From Macrostomum lignano (taxonomy: Eukaryota): a stretch of DNA of 64,000 nt. The notes beneath the pieces are model-generated. The model was given only the letters and a program-made list of their open reading frames with translations. It was not told where the DNA came from and did no database searches. Shown here one piece after another: positions 36,650-63,023 of the stretch. The DNA is taken from the NCBI GenBank assembly GCA_002269645.1, contig NIVC01002621.1:92318-156317 (forward strand). Reading direction: 5' to 3'. Position 1 is the stretch's first letter, and each line of letters opens with the position of its first letter. The translations under genes and the position numbers were made by a program.

Positions 36650-37282
36650 AGAGTGACAGGCACACAGGGGTAAGGAGTGACAGACACAGGGGTAAGGAGT
36701 GACAGGCACACAGGGGTAATAGTGACAGACACACAGGGGTAAGGAGTGACAGGCACACAGGGGTAAGGAGTGACAGGCACACAGGGGTAAGGAGTGACAG
36801 GCACACAGGGGTAAGGAGTGACAGGCACACAGGGGTAAGGAGTGACAGACACACAGGGGTAAGGAGTGACAGGCACACAGGGGTAAGGAGTGACAGGCAC
36901 ACAGGGGTAATAGTGACAGACACACAGGGGTAAGAAGTGACAGGCACACAGGGGTAAGGAGTGACAGACACACATGGGTAAGGAGTGACAGACACACAAG
37001 GGTAAGGAGTGACAGACACACAAGGGTAAGGAGTGACAGACACACAAGGGTAAGGAGTGACAGGCACACAGGGGTAATAGTGACAGACACACAGGGGTAA
37101 GGAGTGACAGGCACACAGGGGTAAGGAGTGACAGACACACATGGGTAAGGAGTGACAGACACACAAGGGTAAGGAGTGACAGACACACAAGGGTAAGGAG
37201 TGACAGACACACAAGGGTAAGGAGTGACAGACACACATGGGTAAGGAGTGACAGACACACAAGGGTAAGGAGTGACAGACAG
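36650..37282. repeat. 24-bp minisatellite (CACACAGGGGTAAGGAGTGACAGG), probably inside the YEATS4 3' UTR
   Basis: About 26 copies between the stop (37322) and the next minus-strand AATAAA (36493-36498). Confidence 0.9.
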
Positions 37283-37321: not shown

Positions 37322-37874
37322 TCAGTCAGCGCCGGCAGCGGCGGAAGCGGCGCCCTCCAGCCGGGCCACCATGGCCTTGAGCCGGTCAGCCGCATCCCGC
37401 CGCTTCCGAATGACATCCTTGAGCAGGTCCAGCTCGGCCTTGAGCTCCCGCCGGCCGGAGCGGACCATTTCAAGGTCGCGCAGCTTTTTAGCCGCGTAGT
37501 CAACACCGACGGCGCTGCCCCAGTGTCGGTCGGAGCGGCAGAGGCGCGGCGCAGTCAGCAGGTCGTACGTGGCCTTGGTCGGCTCGTTGAACACCAGCTC
37601 ATCGTAGAGCTCCACCTGGCGTGCGGGCGGGAGGCTTTCTGTACCTGTCTGTCTGTTTGTCTCGTGTTTGTGAGTCTGTCTGTCTGTCTGTCTGTCTCAG
37701 TTTGTCTGTCTCTCTGTCTGTCTGTCTGTATTAGTGTCTGTCAGCCTGTCTGTCTGTCTGTCTGTCTTTCTTAGTATCTATCTGCCTGTCTGTCTGTCTG
37801 TCTGTATGTCTTTCTTAGTATCTATCTGCCTGTCTGTCTGTCTGTCTGTATGTCTTTCTTAGTATCTATCTGCC

Positions 37875-37947
<73 letters not shown>

Positions 37948-37973
37948 ATCTGTCTGTCTGTCTGTTTGTCAGC

Positions 37974-38007
<34 letters not shown>

Positions 38008-38409
38008 CTCTGCCTACCAACTCACTGTCAAGGCCGTCCTCCCAGTGGTGACATCCGGATTCCGTTGATCGAACAGTTTCAACAAGTGAAACAGGGTCAC
38101 CGGTTTCTCGGCTGGGTCATGCCAGACCAGCCTGATTGACAGTTCGAATTCGCCCCAGCCGGTCTCGGTGAGTTCGTAGGGCGGCTCCGTCACGGTGCGC
38201 ACGGGGTTGGCGTAGCTCTCGTGCAGCTTGAATTGTACGTGTCGCACGTAGGCGGACATGCAGTCGTTCACGGCTGGCCGGATGTACACCGTCCACTCGT
38301 GCGTGTGCCCGTCTTCGTCCCGTTTCCGGCCGAGAAAACGGGCGGAATTGCCATAGACTATGGGCTTCACCACGCTGGCGTTCTTGACGCGACCTGACAC
38401 GACCTCGGC
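37322..38409 (-). CDS. YEATS4: YEATS domain-containing protein 4 (GAS41/Yaf9), ~226 aa
   Basis: Exons 38409-38026 and 37615-37322 (GT-AG, phase 0; the intron is (TCTG)n-rich). Motifs [70 protein letters not shown], and a C-terminal coiled coil. No in-frame ATG upstream (in-frame TAA at 38472-38470). Confidence 0.92.
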
Positions 38410-38554
38410 CTGCACAGGGTGCGCGTTGGTTGCGGGGATAAGTTTGGGAACATTTGGCTGGCTTGCGACTTATTTACAGGTGACCAAGCACCTGATAATT
38501 GCTTCTGATTGAAAGGTATTGGGTAGCCTGCGATCCACTATATCAAAGATAAGT

Positions 38555-39048
38555 AGCTAATGACCAAATGTGACCAGTAGCTTATGACCAAATTTGATTA
38601 GTAGCTTATGACCAAATGTGACCAGTAGCTTATGACCAAATTTGATTAGTAGCTTATGACCAAATCTGACCAGTAGCTAATGACCGAATTCCACCAGTAG
38701 CTAATGACCGATTTCGACCAGCAGCTAATGACCGAATGCGACCAGTAGCTAATGACAAAATTTGACCAGTAGCTAATGACCAAATTCCACCAGCAGCTAA
38801 TGACCAAATTCGACCAGTAGCTAATGACCAAGTGTTACCGGTAGCTAATGACCGATTTTGATCAGTAGCTAATGACCAAGTGTTACCGGTAGCTAATGAC
38901 CGATTTTGATCAGTAGCTAATGACCAAATGTTACCAGTAGCTAATGACCAAGTGTTACCGGTAGCTAATGATCGATTTTGATCAGTAGCTAATGACCAAA
39001 TTCGACTAGTAGCTAATGACCAAATTCGACTAGTAGCTAATGACCAAC
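38555..39048. repeat. 24-bp minisatellite (GACCAGTAGCTAATGACCAAATTC) upstream of the YEATS4 acceptor
   Basis: About 20 copies. Confidence 0.9.
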
Positions 39049-39595
39049 TAAATGAGATGAGTAGCTTATAACTAAATGAGATGAAATCTATGACAGAGCT
39101 GTGTAACTAATGCTAATAGCTTCATACCGAAATCAAAGAGAAAGAACTCAAAGAGCACTTCAATCCAAAAATCAGTAAAAAGCAGGCAGTCAGCTGACTT
39201 GCTATTATATTAGCTAGGTGCAACACCAGACCTTGCAAATGCTCAAAATAGATTAACCAGCTTTAACACAGGAAGTTGAGCTTGCGGAAGCATCAGATTA
39301 AGAATTAATACGCGCCTAAAAATGCTATTGAACACAAAAAAAGTTTAAGAATTTCTTGTACTCGTATAAAAAGCAGATTTTGTGAGGAGTGCGTTAATAA
39401 TCGGAAAAAAATAGAAATCAGAGAAAATCGAGAGAAAAATGTTTATTATTCTACTGATAGTAACTGAAAGATTTATCATTACTTTTTGTAAAAAAAACAC
39501 TTAAAAAGCTATTATAAGGCCGTCTGACTGATATTAAAAATACTACTAGGGTTGAAGACATTGCGAGCGCTCATTTAGAATACAAGTGACTGATC

Positions 39596-40543
39596 TCAAA
39601 CGTCCGTGTAGTCGCGAACCCAGGCTCGCTGCCGACGGACGCTAGTCGAGGAACGCCGACAAGGACGCGGTGGCAGCGGCGGCGGCAGCTGAGCCGGCAG
39701 CGGCGGGGGCGGCGGAGGCAGCGGCATCGCCCGTCGACTGCCGACCAGGGAGGGAGTCGGGACGCCGACAAGACGCCGCAGGTCGTCCGTGAGCTGCCGA
39801 AGCTCGTCAGCCAGGACGGCCCGGCTCGGATCGGCGGCTGTCGTCGTCGACCGGCCCGGCCGGCCGGCCCGCAGCTGCGCCGCCTCCGCCTCCAAATCCG
39901 CCGCTCGCGCCGACCAGCGAAGGCAGCAGCCGCAAACGCCAGCGCCGCCGCAGGCGCTGCCGCCACAGTCGCCGCCGCCGCCTCTGCCGCAACTCGAGCC
40001 CCTCTCGGCCATCAGCGAGGTGACAACGAGGCAAGCGTCCAAGCCGATCCTCAGCTCGGCCAGCTGAGCAGCCAGGCTGTCACCGCCGTCGCCGCTAAGG
40101 CAGGAGGTGTCGCTGAATGCGCTCAGTTCGTCCTCCCCGAATTCGTCATTGAAATCGTCCGGCAGCAGGCGGTCCAGACTCTCGCCGAAGTCGCCAAGGA
40201 GGCGGTCGGAGCCGCCGCTGCCGCAGCGCAGCATGGAGCGACGCAGCAGGTGCAGCAGCTCCCGCTTCAGGCAGAGCGGCGGCACGAGTCCGGCGGCGGC
40301 TTTCTTGGCTGACGCGCCCGGCCCAAAGCCGCCGCGGCTGCGCAGCTGCTGGGAATTGTCGGCCAGCCGCTGCAGCCGGTCGGAGGCGGCAGAGAAAATC
40401 TCCTGAAGCCGGTCGAGCAACAGCTCGGCTGGACCGCCAACGCCGCTGCCGCCGCCGCAGGCGCAGAGGCACCTTCGGCAGGCGAAGAGAAGGCGAAGAG
40501 AGGTCAGAGTGGCGGCCACGGCGTCCGACTGAGACTGCTGCAT
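39596..40543 (-). CDS. Hypothetical single-exon protein (315 aa), helical/acidic with Pro-rich tail ending YTDV
   Basis: GC-rich 948-nt ORF with coding-like composition bounded by AT-rich/repeat DNA; AATAAA at 39442-39447 plus a U-rich tract downstream. No family recognised. Confidence 0.65.
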   Translation of the reverse strand: MQQSQSDAVAATLTSLRLLFACRRCLCACGGGSGVGGPAELLLDRLQEIFSAASDRLQRLADNSQQLRSRGGFGPGASAKKAAAGLVPPLCLKRELLHLLRRSMLRCGSGGSDRLLGDFGESLDRLLPDDFNDEFGEDELSAFSDTSCLSGDGGDSLAAQLAELRIGLDACLVVTSLMAERGSSCGRGGGGDCGGSACGGAGVCGCCLRWSARAADLEAEAAQLRAGRPGRSTTTAADPSRAVLADELRQLTDDLRRLVGVPTPSLVGSRRAMPLPPPPPPLPAQLPPPLPPRPCRRSSTSVRRQRAWVRDYTDV

Positions 40544-40589
40544 CTCCTGCCGCCGGGTCAGAGGAGGCTGGTCATTCTATCTTGGCAAT

Positions 40590-41310
40590 GAGTCTGATAA
40601 TCACTCACTATCAGGGATAGATAATCACTCACTATCAGGGATAGATAATCACTCACTATCAGGGATGGATAATCACTCACTATCAGTGATGGATAATCAC
40701 TCACTATCAGGGATGGATAATCATTCACTATCGGGGATGGATAATCACTCACTACGAGTATCAGTGATGGATAATCACTCACTACGAGTATCAGGGATGG
40801 AAAATCACTCTCTCAGTGATGGATAATCACTCTCTAAGTGATGGATAATCACTCACTATCAGGGATGCATAATCACTCACTATCAGTGATGGAGAATCAC
40901 TCTCAGTGATGGATAATCACTCACTATCAGGGATGGATAATCACTCACTATCAGGGATGGATAATCACTCACTATCAGTGATGGATAATCACTCACTATC
41001 AGTGATGGATAATCACTCACTATCAGGGATGGATAATCACTCACTATCAGGGATGGATAATCACTCACTATCAGTGATGGATAATCACTCACTATCAGGG
41101 ATGGATAATCACTCTCTAAGTGATGGATAATCACTCTCTAAGTGATGGATAATCACTCTCTAAGTGATGGATAATCACTCTCTAAGTGATGGATAATCAC
41201 TCTCTAAGTGATGGATAATCACTCTCTAAGTGATGGATAATCACTCTCAGGGATAAATAATCACTCCCTATCAGTGATGGATAATCACTCACTATCAGGG
41301 ATGGATAATC
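40590..41310. repeat. 24-bp minisatellite (ATGGATAATCACTCACTATCAGGG)
   Basis: About 30 copies, with a block of 22-bp variants near 41110-41250. Confidence 0.9.
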
Positions 41311-41849
41311 ACCAATCACTCACTATTGAAGATAATTGATTAACCTATTGGAGATGGATAATCAGTCTATTTGATGGTGTAATCACTATCGCAAGTGTAT
41401 AACTCCTCAATCAAGGAAAAACTAACAAGGGAGTAACCTATTATTCGATCTATATCCATGCAGGTACGCGTATGCATTAGTAAGTCAACGAAAGAAACGA
41501 ACTTTCTTAAAAAAATAGCTGGTTAACAAAATAGCTGGGAAAAATGAAAACAAAATTTAATGATTACATCAGATGTTGCGCAAAAACATGGCCAAAGAGG
41601 AGCAAAAACTGTATCAATGAGATGGCAACAGAGAATTAATAAATGCCGCTAAAATTAGATATACACAGTTACTAAGCTATCTGATATATATAATCAACTA
41701 TTTCTCAAATTCCTCACTGCTTCATCCTCATTCTATTATCAAAGATGCAATGGTTCGCCCATCAGTTATTATTGCTCTCCGTTACTGTTTAGTGTTGCCG
41801 CAAGCTAACCCAGCTTCACCACATAAATTCCCTAATCAAAACGGCCATT

Positions 41850-42510
41850 GCTGAGATGTCAAGGCTCACGGGGGGATTGCTGAGATGTCAAGGCTTACTG
41901 GGAATTCCTGAGATGTCAAGGCTTACTGGGAATTCCTGAGATGTCAAGGCTTATTGGGAATTGCTGAGATGTCAAGGCTTACTGAGAATTCCTGAGATAT
42001 CAAGGCTTATTGGGAATTCCTGAGATGTCAAGGCTTACTGGGAATTCCTGAGATGTCAAGGCTTACTGGGAATTGCTGAGATGTCAAGGCTTACTGGGAA
42101 TTGCTGAGATGTCAAGGCTTACTGGGAATTCCTGAGATGTCAAGGCTTACTGGGAATTCCTGAGATGTCAAGGCTTACTGGGAATTCCTGAGATGTCAAG
42201 GCTTATTGGGAATTCCTGAGATGTCAAGGCTTACTGGGAATTCCTGAGATGTCAAGGCTTACTGGGAATTCCTGAGATGTCAAGGCTTACTGGGAATTCC
42301 TGAGATATCAAGGCTTACTGGGAATTCCTGAGATGTCAAGGCTTACTGGGAATTCCTGAGATGTCAAGGCTTACTGGGAATTCCTGAGATGTCAAGGCTT
42401 ACTGGGAATTCCTGAGATGTCAAGGCTTACTGGGAATTGCTGAGATATCAAGACTCACGGGGATCGCTGAGATGTCAATGCTTACTGGGGGGCATTGCTG
42501 AGATGTCAAG
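41850..42510. repeat. 28-bp minisatellite (CCTGAGATGTCAAGGCTTACTGGGAATT)
   Basis: About 23 copies, starting right after the zinc-finger gene AATAAA (42550-42555, minus). Confidence 0.92.
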
Positions 42511-42782
42511 GCTGAGAGGTCAGAAGCTACATGCAGTTTATTCAAAATTTTTATTCCACTCTTTGTTGCCTCCTCAACAGGGGGAGGGGGCACTGATTGC
42601 TGGTACCTTCTAAAAGACAAAAATCCCCATTAGAGACATACAGATATGTACGAGTACAGCGGCCCTGACGTTCTGGTTCTGGCACGACAAGATCCAAGCC
42701 AATTTTTAGCCAAGCTTCAGAGCTCCTCTGCCCCTCCCCCCCCACACTGAATCCCCCACAGAATAATTGCATCGGTCTATTA

Positions 42783-44281
42783 TCACGATCGTTTCTTCCG
42801 CAGTGAGGCGGCTGCCTTGACCGCGGCGGCCGCATCGGCCAGCTGGTGCTCCCGGTCCATGTGCCGGCGCAGCAGGTAGCGCGACATGAAACGGGAGCCG
42901 CACAGGCGGCAGTCGTAGGTGAAGTCGGTGTGCTTGTCCCGTATGTGGCAGCGCAGCAGGTAGCGAGTATTGCAGGCGTACGGGCAGAGGCTGCACGCGA
43001 AGGGCTGCGGCAGAGGCCGGTGGCTGTCCTGGTGCTGGCGGAGGCTCCGCTCGTTCTTATAGTAGCGGCCGCAGACTCCGCAGCGCAGCCGGCCGGACAT
43101 CGGGTCGGAGTTGTGCGCCACGGTCAGGTGACGCCTGAGGGCCTCGGCGGTGTCCAGCACCTGCGGGCACTGGGGACAGCGCTTTGGCTGCCTGGCAAGC
43201 TGGCAGGGGTGCATGAGGCGCACGTGCCGGGTGAGGAAGCGCTCCTGCAGGAACAGCCGGCTGCAGAACGGGCACTTGAATGCGCTGCGACTGTCGGATG
43301 AGGATTTGAAATATTAGTGCGGAGATTATTTGCACAGAGAATGTACGTGTCTTAAAAAGTAGTGCAACTCAAAGCGCACCTGTGCTCATCATTCCAATGC
43401 TGACGAAGGCCTTCCAACATGCTGAATCGACGAACGCAACGGGGGCAGCGGTAGATTTCACAGCCGGGATGCTCCTCAGCCACGTGCTTCTCGGCGGCCT
43501 GGGTGTCGAAGAAGACGCACTCGCACACTGGACAGCGACAGGCGGAGTGGAAGTGGAGCTGGTGGTAGAACAGGCTGTGCAGTTTGGTGAACCGCCCAGG
43601 GCAGGTTCCGCACTGCAGCGTGGCCGGGCAGCGCCGGGTGGCGTTGCCAGCGGCGGCGTCCTCGCTAGACAGCGCTGCTGGCCCGGCTTCTCCAGCCTGA
43701 GCCTCCTCGGCTGGCTCAGGACCTGCCGCGGGGGTAGCTGTGAGGCGGGCTCCGGATGGCCCCTCCTGCTGCTCACAAGGCTGCTGATCAGCGCCAGTCG
43801 ATGCCCACAAGTTCAGCAAGCGCGACATCAGCGGGTCAGCGGCATCCTCAAACTCGGCGTGAGCTGCCTCATCTAACTGGTCCATTCTAACCTCCAAATC
43901 GACAATACAGTTCGGCGGCTGTTGTTGCAGATTTTGCTTCCGCGAACAGGCGTGACCCCTGAGAGCGGCCAAGGATTTGAATACGAGTCTGCAAGCGGAG
44001 CAGCTGTGAGCTTCCACTGTAGCGGCGGAGGTCGCAGTCGTGGCGCAGTCGCCGCTATGGTAGATGCTGAGGTGCTCGTCGATCAGGGCGCAGTCGGTGC
44101 TGCAAGCGTCGCACAGAGGGCACACAAACAGAGTGTAACTGAGCTGCTGGCCGCCGTGACAGCTGGAAATGTGCCGGTTGAGTTTGTCAACAACCAGGGT
44201 GGCGAAAGAGCAGGCTGGGCAGGAGAGCACGTGAACCCAGGGCGGGTGGCGGCCGCCCCCGCTGGGCTGGGTGGCACTCAT
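42783..44281 (-). CDS. C2H2 zinc-finger protein (~469 aa, ~11 fingers)
   Basis: Exons 44281-43380 and 43290-42783 (AG|gtgcgc ... gacag|T, phase 2). Six C2H2/C2HC units in exon 1 and five in exon 2 (e.g. CGVCGRYYKNERSLRQHQDSH). Confidence 0.88.
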
Positions 44282-45639
44282 TGCTTGCTCTCGAAATTGC
44301 TGCTTTTAATGCACTTGCGAGCTGCAATATTTTAACCAAATACTGAAATAGAGAAAAACAGGGAAATCTTTTTGCATTTCTGAGCACATTTTTAATAGCA
44401 TATTTTGTATAATTTGTAATTAATACTGTTTAATCACAAGCTGTATAAGAAAATAATAACCTAGTATATTTTGTTCAAAGTAAAATCTATATTATTGATT
44501 TTGGAGTCTCATCAAGCTATTAAAACAAAAAAGTTATATAATATTAGCTAGATAATTAATTGCTATGCTTAAGTTTTCTTTGCTTAAGTTCTCTTATGTT
44601 GTATAAACAGACTATATGTACCTTATTGGTTTTAATTTTACCCATTACTGGTGTTAGACACAAGTCCATTAATAAGCATTAATAAGTGTTCATTTAACAT
44701 TAATGGACTGCCATTAAGATTTTTTGCACTAATGGATTAATGAATTTGCACTAATAATTTTTTGACTTAATGAAAAATTCATTGTTAACATTAATGACAA
44801 TGCAAATGACACCATAGATGCAAAAAAGAACAAAAATATAAGTCCTACAAGAAGTTACAACATTACAAACAGTCTAATTTATCCAAGTGCCTAATTATTG
44901 ACTTTATTTATGATGATAAACATGTAAATTAAACAACTTTTTACTTACAAACTCTAGGAATAAATTAAAATTGTAAGCTTTTTGGTTGCATATGAGCATT
45001 TCCTTTATTCATTTCTTTCCCAAACTTTGTAAGTTTCTGCTATGCCTGTTAGTACTACTGAAACAACCTTGTTTATATTTTATTATTAACTAATTAGATT
45101 TCAAGTTCCAAATAAATAGGTTGGTGACCTCTATATGTTTGCTAAAAAGATAGAAGAATGCATTATAAAGTGAGTTTTGGAAAAAGTGCAAAATTCTTAT
45201 ATTTTCTAAGTTAATGTTAATGGATCAAGCTTATTAACAATTATCAGTTAACTTTCAATCAACTTGAGGAATTTAGGAGTTAATCAGTTTTTTTAAAAGC
45301 TAATACCAATGAATTTTTTAAAAACCTATATATTTTGGATGGAACAAAAGTCTTGTCATTTATAATATAACTCTGCTAAAATAGCTATTATTATATAATT
45401 TTTCACCTAAATCAAAAATTTCCATAGACAAACTGGCTACAAAAAAAACTGGCTTGCCACAAGAAAAACTCACTTAAAGCCAGGCTTAAAACCTTTGAGT
45501 GTCTTTAAGGCATTCAACGAGCCTAGGAAAATATAGTTGAAACATGGAGCCTGATGAGATGTATTTTTAGTTTTATATGGCTACCTGACTAAAGCTCAGT
45601 GATTGAGCTACCAAAGTCAACCAAGATCTAAAACCTGCT

Positions 45640-46640
45640 TGGGACAGTGCTGTTTCATCCCTAAGAACCATACAGCATTAGATGAAAGATGTCAATGATA
45701 GGACATATGAGTGTCATATTTTGTCCTTCCTTCAGGCACTCGTAGGAAGTGCTTAGCAATAGTGACAGACCTAGCTGGCCAAAGAGCTCAAAGACAAGTG
45801 AAATAGCAATGAAGGTAAAGGAAATGATCTGTAAGGATCCCCATATCTCATCTCGTGATCTAGCTGAGCATCTGACTAGTGACCATAGCACAATACTTTG
45901 CATCTTTGAGAAGACCTACAGCTAAGGTAGGTGTGGTCTGTGTAGGTACCTACAACTTCAGGAATGAGCAGAGACAGATGCAAGTCAATTCTGCCATACA
46001 ATTGTAATGGGTTATGCTAAGGATAGAGGAAAAGTATAATTGGTACACTGTTCAAGACAAGACATAGGGGCCTAGGTATCCTAGGATGCTTATAGAACCA
46101 AAACTGACAATAGACTTGGCTTGAGAGGAGAAAGCTCCAAAAGAAGGTTTGCAACCAAATATAATGACAAAGTGGAAGTCCCTACTGATAGTCATGTTCA
46201 TAGCCATAAAGCAATTCTTAGTCATTGTATTGCCTTAGAAAGAGACAATGGATACCAAGCAAATACTGAGCTACCTTAAGCAAACTAGAAACCTATAGCA
46301 TACTTTGCACTCAAAGTCCAACCCAGTTCAACTGAGGTCTGAGCAAGATCAGCTTGCAAATAGACAATGCTTGACTATATATTGCATGACTCTTGGGATT
46401 TCCTGCAATAACTCTATTACTATGATTTGGCAGAGCCCCTATAGTCCCAATCTAAACCTATGTGACCAATTTATGTTCTTTTGGCTAAAGAATGCCAATA
46501 GCTATCAAGAGGTTTGAAGATTACTTATTGCAAATGTTGCGGATCATCTCTAAAAGTGCCTTCTAAGACCAGACTAGGTAGATCTGCTCCTAGACCACTG
46601 TCCATTGCTAGCTTCATACTTTATATAATAGACCTTGACT
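45640..46640 (+). mobile_element. Decayed mariner (Tc1/mariner) transposase relic; boundaries approximate
   Basis: HTH-like DRPSWPKSSKTSEIAMKVKEMICKDPHISSRDLAEHL (from 45764), KSLLIVMF..LP*KETMD, the LQIDNA* motif, and WQSPYSPNLNLCDQFMFFWLK (46428-46490; cf. YSPDLxPxD). Many stops and frameshifts. Confidence 0.75.
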
Positions 46641-47208
46641 TAAATTAAAACTGTCTAAAACTAGGCCTAGGCTAGGCCTAAGCCTAAAGCCAAAGGCAAT
46701 GAAATTCTATCTTAAAATTAAAAATAATAATTCTATCTAAAATACAAATATTAGCCTAATAATTAGGCCTGAGATATTGAGATAAAAATAAAATTTTATT
46801 TTTTAGCCTAGCTATATATAGGGCATAGTTAAATTTGAAGCTATAAAGCTAGGCCTAATAACTAACCTTTTAGGAACTTAATAGGCCCTAAGTATAATTG
46901 TTGCACTTGCAAGTTATAAATAATAAATTATAATACATGTAATTATACATGCAGTGTAGGCTTCTATTAAAGTATTATAAGGCTTATTAAAGTTAGGGCC
47001 TAGGCCTATTTATATGAGTAAAAAACAGCAAACATAAATCATTATAGATTCTATAGCTATATATTCTTACAGTATTATTAGAAAGGCCAACTTTTCTTTC
47101 ACTTAGGCCCCTAATTTATTTAAAAGCTTTAGACTTTGAATTAGATTAAAGGTTAAAAATCACCTTCAAATAAAACAAAGAAAAACAATATAGGCCTACG
47201 TGTCTGAG

Positions 47209-47418
47209 CAGAAGTGTCGCCAAGGATTTTATGGTGGAGGGGCAAAGCCAAGAAACCAAAAGTCCTATAATATTTTGGGAATCAATGTTGTTTTGCCATT
47301 AACACTGATTTTTGCACTCAACTCAACCCTGAAATCTGAACTTCTGAACACTCCAGCGAAATTCTCGATTTCCATAACGGATCACAGCTACAGGGCATCA
47401 AGAGTAGCGACACCCTTG
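47209..47418. mobile_element. Degenerate MITE related to the 22083-22410 element
   Basis: Ends CAGAAGTGTCGCCA / TAGCGACACCCTTG; shares the internal TTTTATGGTGG and GATTTCCATAACGG motifs. Confidence 0.55.
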
Positions 47419-47814
47419 TGTTCTGTAACTGATTGTTTACACTAATTTGGGCCTGGTCGTGCTTAATAAAGCTGTATCGCACGTGCTATGAATAAAAAGC
47501 CAACAAACTCACGGTCTTATTTGCTAAGTCTTAACAAATTTAACTGTTTACTTATATTACTCCTTTTTAGAACAAAATTTTATCTCATTTATTAGTAGCT
47601 ATTAAGTACAAAAAATATATTTCTTTAAAATAGAATTCTGTTAACAACATTTTATAGACCGGTTTTATCGTTGGTTCCAATTTTTAAGCTACATTTTCAG
47701 AGAAATTTTTCGAGGCTTAGCCAGGAGATCATAATGGAGCACTAATAAAAGCATGAAAAATAGTCTACTGCATATCTTTCTCCACAATAAATACACCAAC
47801 GCCAACAGCTCAGA

Positions 47815-63023
<15,209 letters not shown>

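Follow-up and report, generated by a model that had tools for sequence, protein, structure and literature searches.

Spliced leaders (SLs) of flatworms can supply more than a 5′ end to the mRNAs that receive them. As summarised in later papers, Cheng et al. 2006 (J Biol Chem 281:733) showed, for Schistosoma, that flatworm SLs end in AUG and that this 3′-terminal AUG is used for the initiator methionine. For Echinococcus granulosus, 143 of the 187 SL-bearing clusters are full-length if the ATG of the SL is used, and this use is conserved among Neodermata (PMC3510090). A 3′ ATG is present on all reported SLs from parasitic flatworms (PMC12582326), and for Macrostomum SLs the terminal ATG has been named the 'translation start codon' (PMC10468722). 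Macrostomum lignano has a single SL sequence of 35 nt, CGGTCTCTTACTGCGAAGACTCAATTTATTGCATG, which ends in TTGCATG; its acceptor motif is [T/C]TNCAG, and a spacer of less than 1 kb was applied as the operon criterion in this species (Ustyantsev & Berezikov 2021, PMC8629364). The last three bases are the only ATG in the M. lignano SL.

Here we describe a M. lignano gene, YEATS4, which very probably obtains its AUG from the trans-spliced leader. It resembles the SL-AUG mRNAs of Schistosoma and Echinococcus in the AUG-ended SL, the in-phase acceptor and the lack of a suitable genomic AUG, and its alignment with orthologues likewise needs just one extra Met. It differs from those of the neodermatan parasites in that its host is a free-living macrostomorph and in that the case is known here from sequence and annotation. 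The gene structure, the absent genomic start, the phase-0 acceptor and the frame across the SL-exon junction were derived from the sequence, while the SL itself and the annotation boundaries, which are based on SL reads, were taken from the literature.

The YEATS4 locus and its transcriptional unit

The window, i.e. the whole stretch of 64 kb that was analysed, is the end of M. lignano contig NIVC01002621.1 (GCA_002269645.1, Mlig_3_7). The locus as fetched from this contig (L001) is base-for-base the reverse complement of the window. It was compared with two further genomic copies, L002 and L003 (NIVC01000146.1). The coordinates of all features are collected in Table 1.

The two exons of YEATS4 join to a product of 225 aa, which is 100% identical to GenBank entries PAA56436.1 and PAA89568.1, listed as hypothetical protein under the name 'BOX15_Mlig025434g3, partial [Macrostomum lignano]'. 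An earlier note on the same DNA had taken it to be from a flatworm, and this match bears it out. An N-terminal YEATS domain (Pfam PF03366, E=1.9e-29, 101.9 bits, residues 35-114) is followed by a C-terminal coiled coil. Sequence identity to animal YEATS4 is 42-48%, and human GAS41 in the PDB matches the product with E=5.6e-62, entry 8x15_W being aligned over residues 6-217. The acyl-lysine cage is kept completely, with all its invariant residues present (H36-T37-H38, S66-Y67 and G85-W86-G87-E88-F89). Judged by these comparisons, the gene is unambiguously the YEATS4/GAS41 orthologue. It shares its domain layout and the GHTH-W, HESY and GWGEF motifs with animal YEATS4/GAS41, a subunit of NuA4/TIP60 and of SRCAP. 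Compared with these proteins it is ordinary, and the difference is found only in the source of the start codon.

The microsatellite in the YEATS4 intron extends over 37645-38012 with a period of 4 and about 92 units of GACA, as annotated by TRF. A deletion of 44 nt is found in the microsatellite region of this intron in L002.

Table 1. Positions of the YEATS4 locus, its upstream cistrons and the associated signals in the 64-kb window. A slash marks a splice junction.
Feature	Position	Strand	Description
g1, first cistron, C2H2 zinc-finger protein	42783..44281	-	469 aa, own ATG, one 89-nt intron
g2, upstream cistron	39596..40546	-	316 aa, 'partial' CDS, starts after ggcggcag/GAG ATG
g2 poly(A) signal AATAAA	39442..39447	-	about 1.0 kb before the YEATS4 acceptor
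24-nt minisatellite	38552..39047	.	about 21 copies, 496 nt; fills half of the g2-YEATS4 spacer
In-frame TAA closing the YEATS4 frame upstream	38470..38472	-	
uORF with out-of-frame ATG	38367..38453	-	28 codons, overlaps the start of the YEATS4 frame
Proposed trans-splice acceptor	38410..38430	-	C-rich pyrimidine tract and ..ctgtgcag/, AG at 38411-38410
YEATS4 exon 1	38026..38409	-	128 codons, then GTGAGT donor at 38025
YEATS4 sole intron	37616..38025	-	410 nt, GTGAGT..CAG, almost entirely (GACA)n microsatellite
YEATS4 exon 2	37322..37615	-	coiled-coil tail, TGA stop
YEATS4 poly(A) signal AATAAA	36493..36498	-	

In L002, the gene names g1, g2 and g3 denote one transcriptional unit, with YEATS4 being g3. 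No Pfam match was obtained for g2, the sequence of which is rich in Gly, Ala and Pro. As the annotated CDSs of g2 and YEATS4 both begin right after acceptors, both downstream cistrons start at GCAG/G. The AUG of the SL is in frame at g2 too, where translation from it would yield MEMQQ.., beginning two residues before the native ATG. With both codons in frame, g2 could start at either of them.

The two downstream cistrons are on the same strand, and the spacer between them is about 1 kb in raw length and about 0.5 kb when the repeat is subtracted, while we infer the poly(A) site and the SL status. In M. lignano, the operons that have been resolved by means of the SL (Wudarski et al. 2017; Ustyantsev & Berezikov 2021) are similar in that they consist of same-strand genes with starts at AG acceptors and with repeat-filled spacers. 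Compared to these, the raw spacer between g2 and YEATS4 is at the long end, and it falls below 1 kb only after subtraction of the minisatellite. Since about 1 kb before repeat subtraction is long for an operon, YEATS4 may instead be transcribed from a promoter of its own, with a short outron. This would leave the conclusion on the start codon intact.

Minisatellites of 24-28 nt in 20-30 copies are found in every spacer of the unit (38552-39047, 40596-41312 and 41847-42513) and also in the YEATS4 3′ UTR, which is about 0.8 kb long (24-nt repeat at 36651-37281). Their copy number varies among the genomic copies, and arrays of this kind are abundant throughout the window. Spacers that are filled by minisatellites are in line with a published comment on the inflation of operon spacers by repeats in M. 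lignano.

The frame upstream of YEATS4

The earlier note on this DNA, made from the sequence alone, had claimed that YEATS4 lacks its own start codon, and this is what was found. The frame is shut by a TAA (38472-38470), and the 20 sense codons between this stop and 38409 do not include a single ATG. There is an ATG at 38453, which opens a uORF, but as it is located 44 nt upstream of 38409 it is out of the YEATS4 frame. The first Met in exon 1 is at codon 51 of the exon, with none earlier. This next in-frame Met, residue 52 of the protein, is inside the YEATS core as defined by Pfam. A start at this position would lead to the loss of 17 core residues, including the GHTHEW motif, the G, H, T, H and W of which do not vary in any of 22 sequences, and homology to human GAS41 extends from residue 6 onward. 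An independent model, UniProt A0A1I8GM24, has 226 aa and starts with QAEVV, and thus likewise is without a Met. There is no genomic AUG which is able to give the conserved N-terminus of YEATS4.

The public annotation provides indirect information on the 5′ end of the transcript. In the work of Wudarski et al. (2017), transcriptional units were first assembled and then divided into genes by TBONE, which placed the boundaries where trimmed SL-containing reads form peaks and at poly(A) sites; ORFs were called by TransDecoder (PMC5730564). The YEATS4 CDS in GenBank covers exactly 38409..37322 (gene range 1088 nt), codes for 225 aa and is flagged as partial. A 5′-partial ORF is called only if the frame is open to the first bases of the transcript. 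Since a longer transcript would extend the ORF towards the TAA, the annotated mRNA starts at 38409-38411, a boundary which was deduced from the CDS coordinates and the published pipeline and not from an mRNA feature.

It may be asked if a genomic start is hidden by an assembly indel between the ATG at 38453 and 38409, in which case the protein would begin with MFPN... The assembly does carry 1-nt indels between otherwise identical copies; over about 3.6 kb, L003 has four of them, and L001 and L002 differ by two. However, the 200 nt upstream of YEATS4 are identical between the copies except for a 3-nt deletion in the pyrimidine tract of L003. As L001 equals L002 in this region and the deletion changes the offset of 44 nt to 41 nt in L003, none of the three copies has the ATG in frame. 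The frame relation on which the earlier note had made its reading depend is thus the same throughout, and an indel finds no support. In addition, the 44-nt stretch contains no homopolymer longer than 4, the UniProt model agrees in having no Met, an extension of the MFPN type is unlike the N-terminus of any orthologue, and the acceptor, with which the annotated transcript begins, is downstream of 38453. An assembly error in this stretch that is common to all copies is very unlikely, and we attach a vanishingly small probability to a start codon that has been concealed in this way.

Two in-frame near-cognate codons, ATC at 38439 and GTG at 38415, are present between the TAA and 38409, and non-AUG initiation occurs in eukaryotes (PMC9851317). 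Translation might start at one of these codons, or at the internal Met52, with no trans-splicing being involved. We consider this very improbable. The out-of-frame AUG at 38453 precedes both near-cognate codons and opens a uORF that overlaps the YEATS4 frame, the annotation puts the end of the transcript at the acceptor, and a start at Met52 would strip the YEATS core as described above.

Polyploidy is recent in M. lignano, and duplicates are numerous (PMC10468722); L003 has a frameshift in YEATS4 exon 2. It is conceivable that the locus in the window is itself a non-functional duplicate which has lost its start, with the real YEATS4 being encoded elsewhere. Against this speaks that the start-less 5′ end is common to all three YEATS4 copies found, two of which are intact over all 225 codons and retain each of the invariant YEATS residues. 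Moreover, no other M. lignano YEATS4 protein was returned by either of the two protein searches. A collection of 5.8 billion proteins, queried both with the entire sequence and with its first 129 aa (Met included), yielded only genome-derived models from GenBank and UniProt and no protein derived from a transcript. A non-functional duplicate is therefore highly unlikely.

In L003, four 1-nt deletions (3869, 4151, 4406 and about 6877) were found when this copy was scored against window positions 37322-40546. All four affect coding sequence, three of them g2 and one YEATS4 exon 2, and the remaining coding sequence is identical. These deletions lead to the frameshifted GenBank protein PAA89581.1 (229 aa) and to a g2 fragment of 175 aa. 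Either L003 is a very young pseudogenised paralogue or there is a local assembly error.

The acceptor site and the predicted junction

At the 5′ end of the annotated CDS, ..caccctgtgcag ends at 38410 and GCC GAG GTC GTG TCA GGT CGC GTC AAG begins at 38409. The earlier note had proposed a phase-0 acceptor at this position, and the AG does end at 38410 while GCC opens at 38409 in the YEATS4 frame. The acceptor sequence TGCAG matches the TNCAG core of the M. lignano SL-acceptor motif. The base that precedes it is a G and not the preferred pyrimidine, which counts against a start at the AUG of the SL. A second AG is found 16 nt into exon 1 (gtgtcag/GT). This candidate was rejected as it would throw the SL AUG out of frame.

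An AG acceptor can be used in cis-splicing as well as in trans-splicing, and shared use has been reported in parasitic flatworms (PMC12582326). This raises the alternative that a cis-spliced upstream coding exon with its own ATG joins the acceptor at 38410 in phase 0, the SL being uninvolved. Nine phase-0 combinations of the type ATG../GT exist between 39596 and 38410. All nine have poor donors, however, and six of them are located upstream of the AATAAA of g2 and thus within the 3′ UTR of that gene. A systematic scan of 38410-39596 did not reveal any GT[AG]AG consensus donor, which agrees with the earlier observation that a usable donor is missing from the upstream 1.2 kb or so. The read-based annotation has no cis exon either; the partial CDS stops at the acceptor, and neither a gene nor an exon is annotated between g2 and YEATS4. 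As no credible ATG..GT exon was encountered upstream of 38409, we have little reason to believe in a cis-spliced start and rate it as very unlikely.

When the SL is joined in silico to exon 1 and exon 2, an ORF of 226 aa results, with the SL AUG at nt 33-35 and without an intervening stop. The context of this AUG is ugcAUGg, where the U at -3 is weak and speaks against its use while the G at +4 is favourable. Orthologues have their Met 3-10 or more residues ahead of GGRVKG, as exemplified by MDVGGRVKG from a crinoid, MADGGQRIKG from a snail and MSEFGPDSGGRVKG from a horseshoe crab. Accordingly, a start with the SL-derived MAEVV.. gives a normal N-terminus.

Within the 64-kb window no SL RNA gene was found, and Rfam gave zero matches at the gathering threshold. 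The SL-exon junction ATTTATTGCATGGCCGAGGTCGTG had no match in JGI metagenome contigs, as expected.

A probable start codon from the leader

In the mechanism that we propose, YEATS4 would be the third cistron of a same-strand unit, following the zinc-finger gene and the gene for the 316-aa protein. SL trans-splicing at ..ctgtgcag (AG at 38411-38410) would cut YEATS4 out of the precursor RNA, and the 35-nt SL would be joined to GCC at 38409, with the predicted junction consisting of ..TTGCATG followed directly by GCCGAGGTC. The final three bases of the SL (nt 33-35) would then be the first, and the sole upstream, AUG of the mature mRNA, and translation from this codon would result in a 226-aa protein starting with MAEVV. 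Both the in-frame TAA and the ATG of the uORF belong to the outron and would be discarded with it. The uORF ATG at 38453 and the next 41 nt are within this outron. We infer that the SL is attached to 38409 and that its AUG is where ribosomes begin on the YEATS4 mRNA.

This is the reading which had been put forward in the earlier note, and it is supported by the combination of an SL that ends in ATG, a phase-0 acceptor, the lack of an in-frame ATG and of a usable donor, and an orthologue-like N-terminus. The general statement that flatworm SLs end in AUG is true for the SL of M. lignano (PMC8629364). The predicted length of about 226 aa and the predicted N-terminal letters turned out to be exact in the in-silico join, and the alignment of the new N-terminus with animal YEATS4 is borne out by a length that is normal for an orthologue.

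A more far-reaching proposal is that translation of YEATS4 is strictly gated by trans-splicing, so that the precursor and any RNA that has not been trans-spliced would be unproductive. A reader involved in H2A.Z deposition and NuA4 would in this way be coupled to the activity of the SL-RNP. We are evenly balanced as to whether such strict gating applies. If it does, YEATS4 is possibly co-regulated with the zinc-finger gene and the 316-aa gene of its unit.

To our knowledge, YEATS4 does not occur in published lists of SL-AUG genes. It is absent from the supplementary tables of the M. lignano papers that were searched, and no paper which names YEATS4 or the Mlig025434 locus was found in a literature search. 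We thus regard YEATS4 as a new instance of a well-known mechanism, and since this mechanism is well documented in flatworms it is an ordinary example. It adds one more conserved housekeeping chromatin factor without its own start codon, in this case from a free-living basal flatworm. It fits the idea that the use of the SL AUG is ancestral in Platyhelminthes and does not raise a new question. Other species of Macrostomum, or other flatworms, might likewise have lost the genomic start codon of YEATS4.

There is also a practical consequence for the databases. The protein is represented by a 'partial' sequence of 225 aa in GenBank and by 226 aa starting from Q in UniProt, while the complete protein very probably has 226 aa and starts with MAEVV. 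The same correction likely extends to many 'partial' proteins of M. lignano for which the CDS begins at an SL acceptor, g2 being an example.

The neighbourhood of the unit was also inspected. The 10 kb that precede g1 (44282-54281) are free of annotated protein-coding genes. An acceptor-like site, TTGCAG, is found 40 nt before the ATG of g1, and an SL joined at this site would not have its AUG in frame. The next same-strand gene downstream of YEATS4 (33110, reverse strand) codes for 261 aa and has its own ATG in the context cggcATGGGC, with a TATA-like ttttataaag about 90 nt upstream (to about 33210). This is a conventional promoter-driven gene which adjoins the putatively SL-dependent ones.
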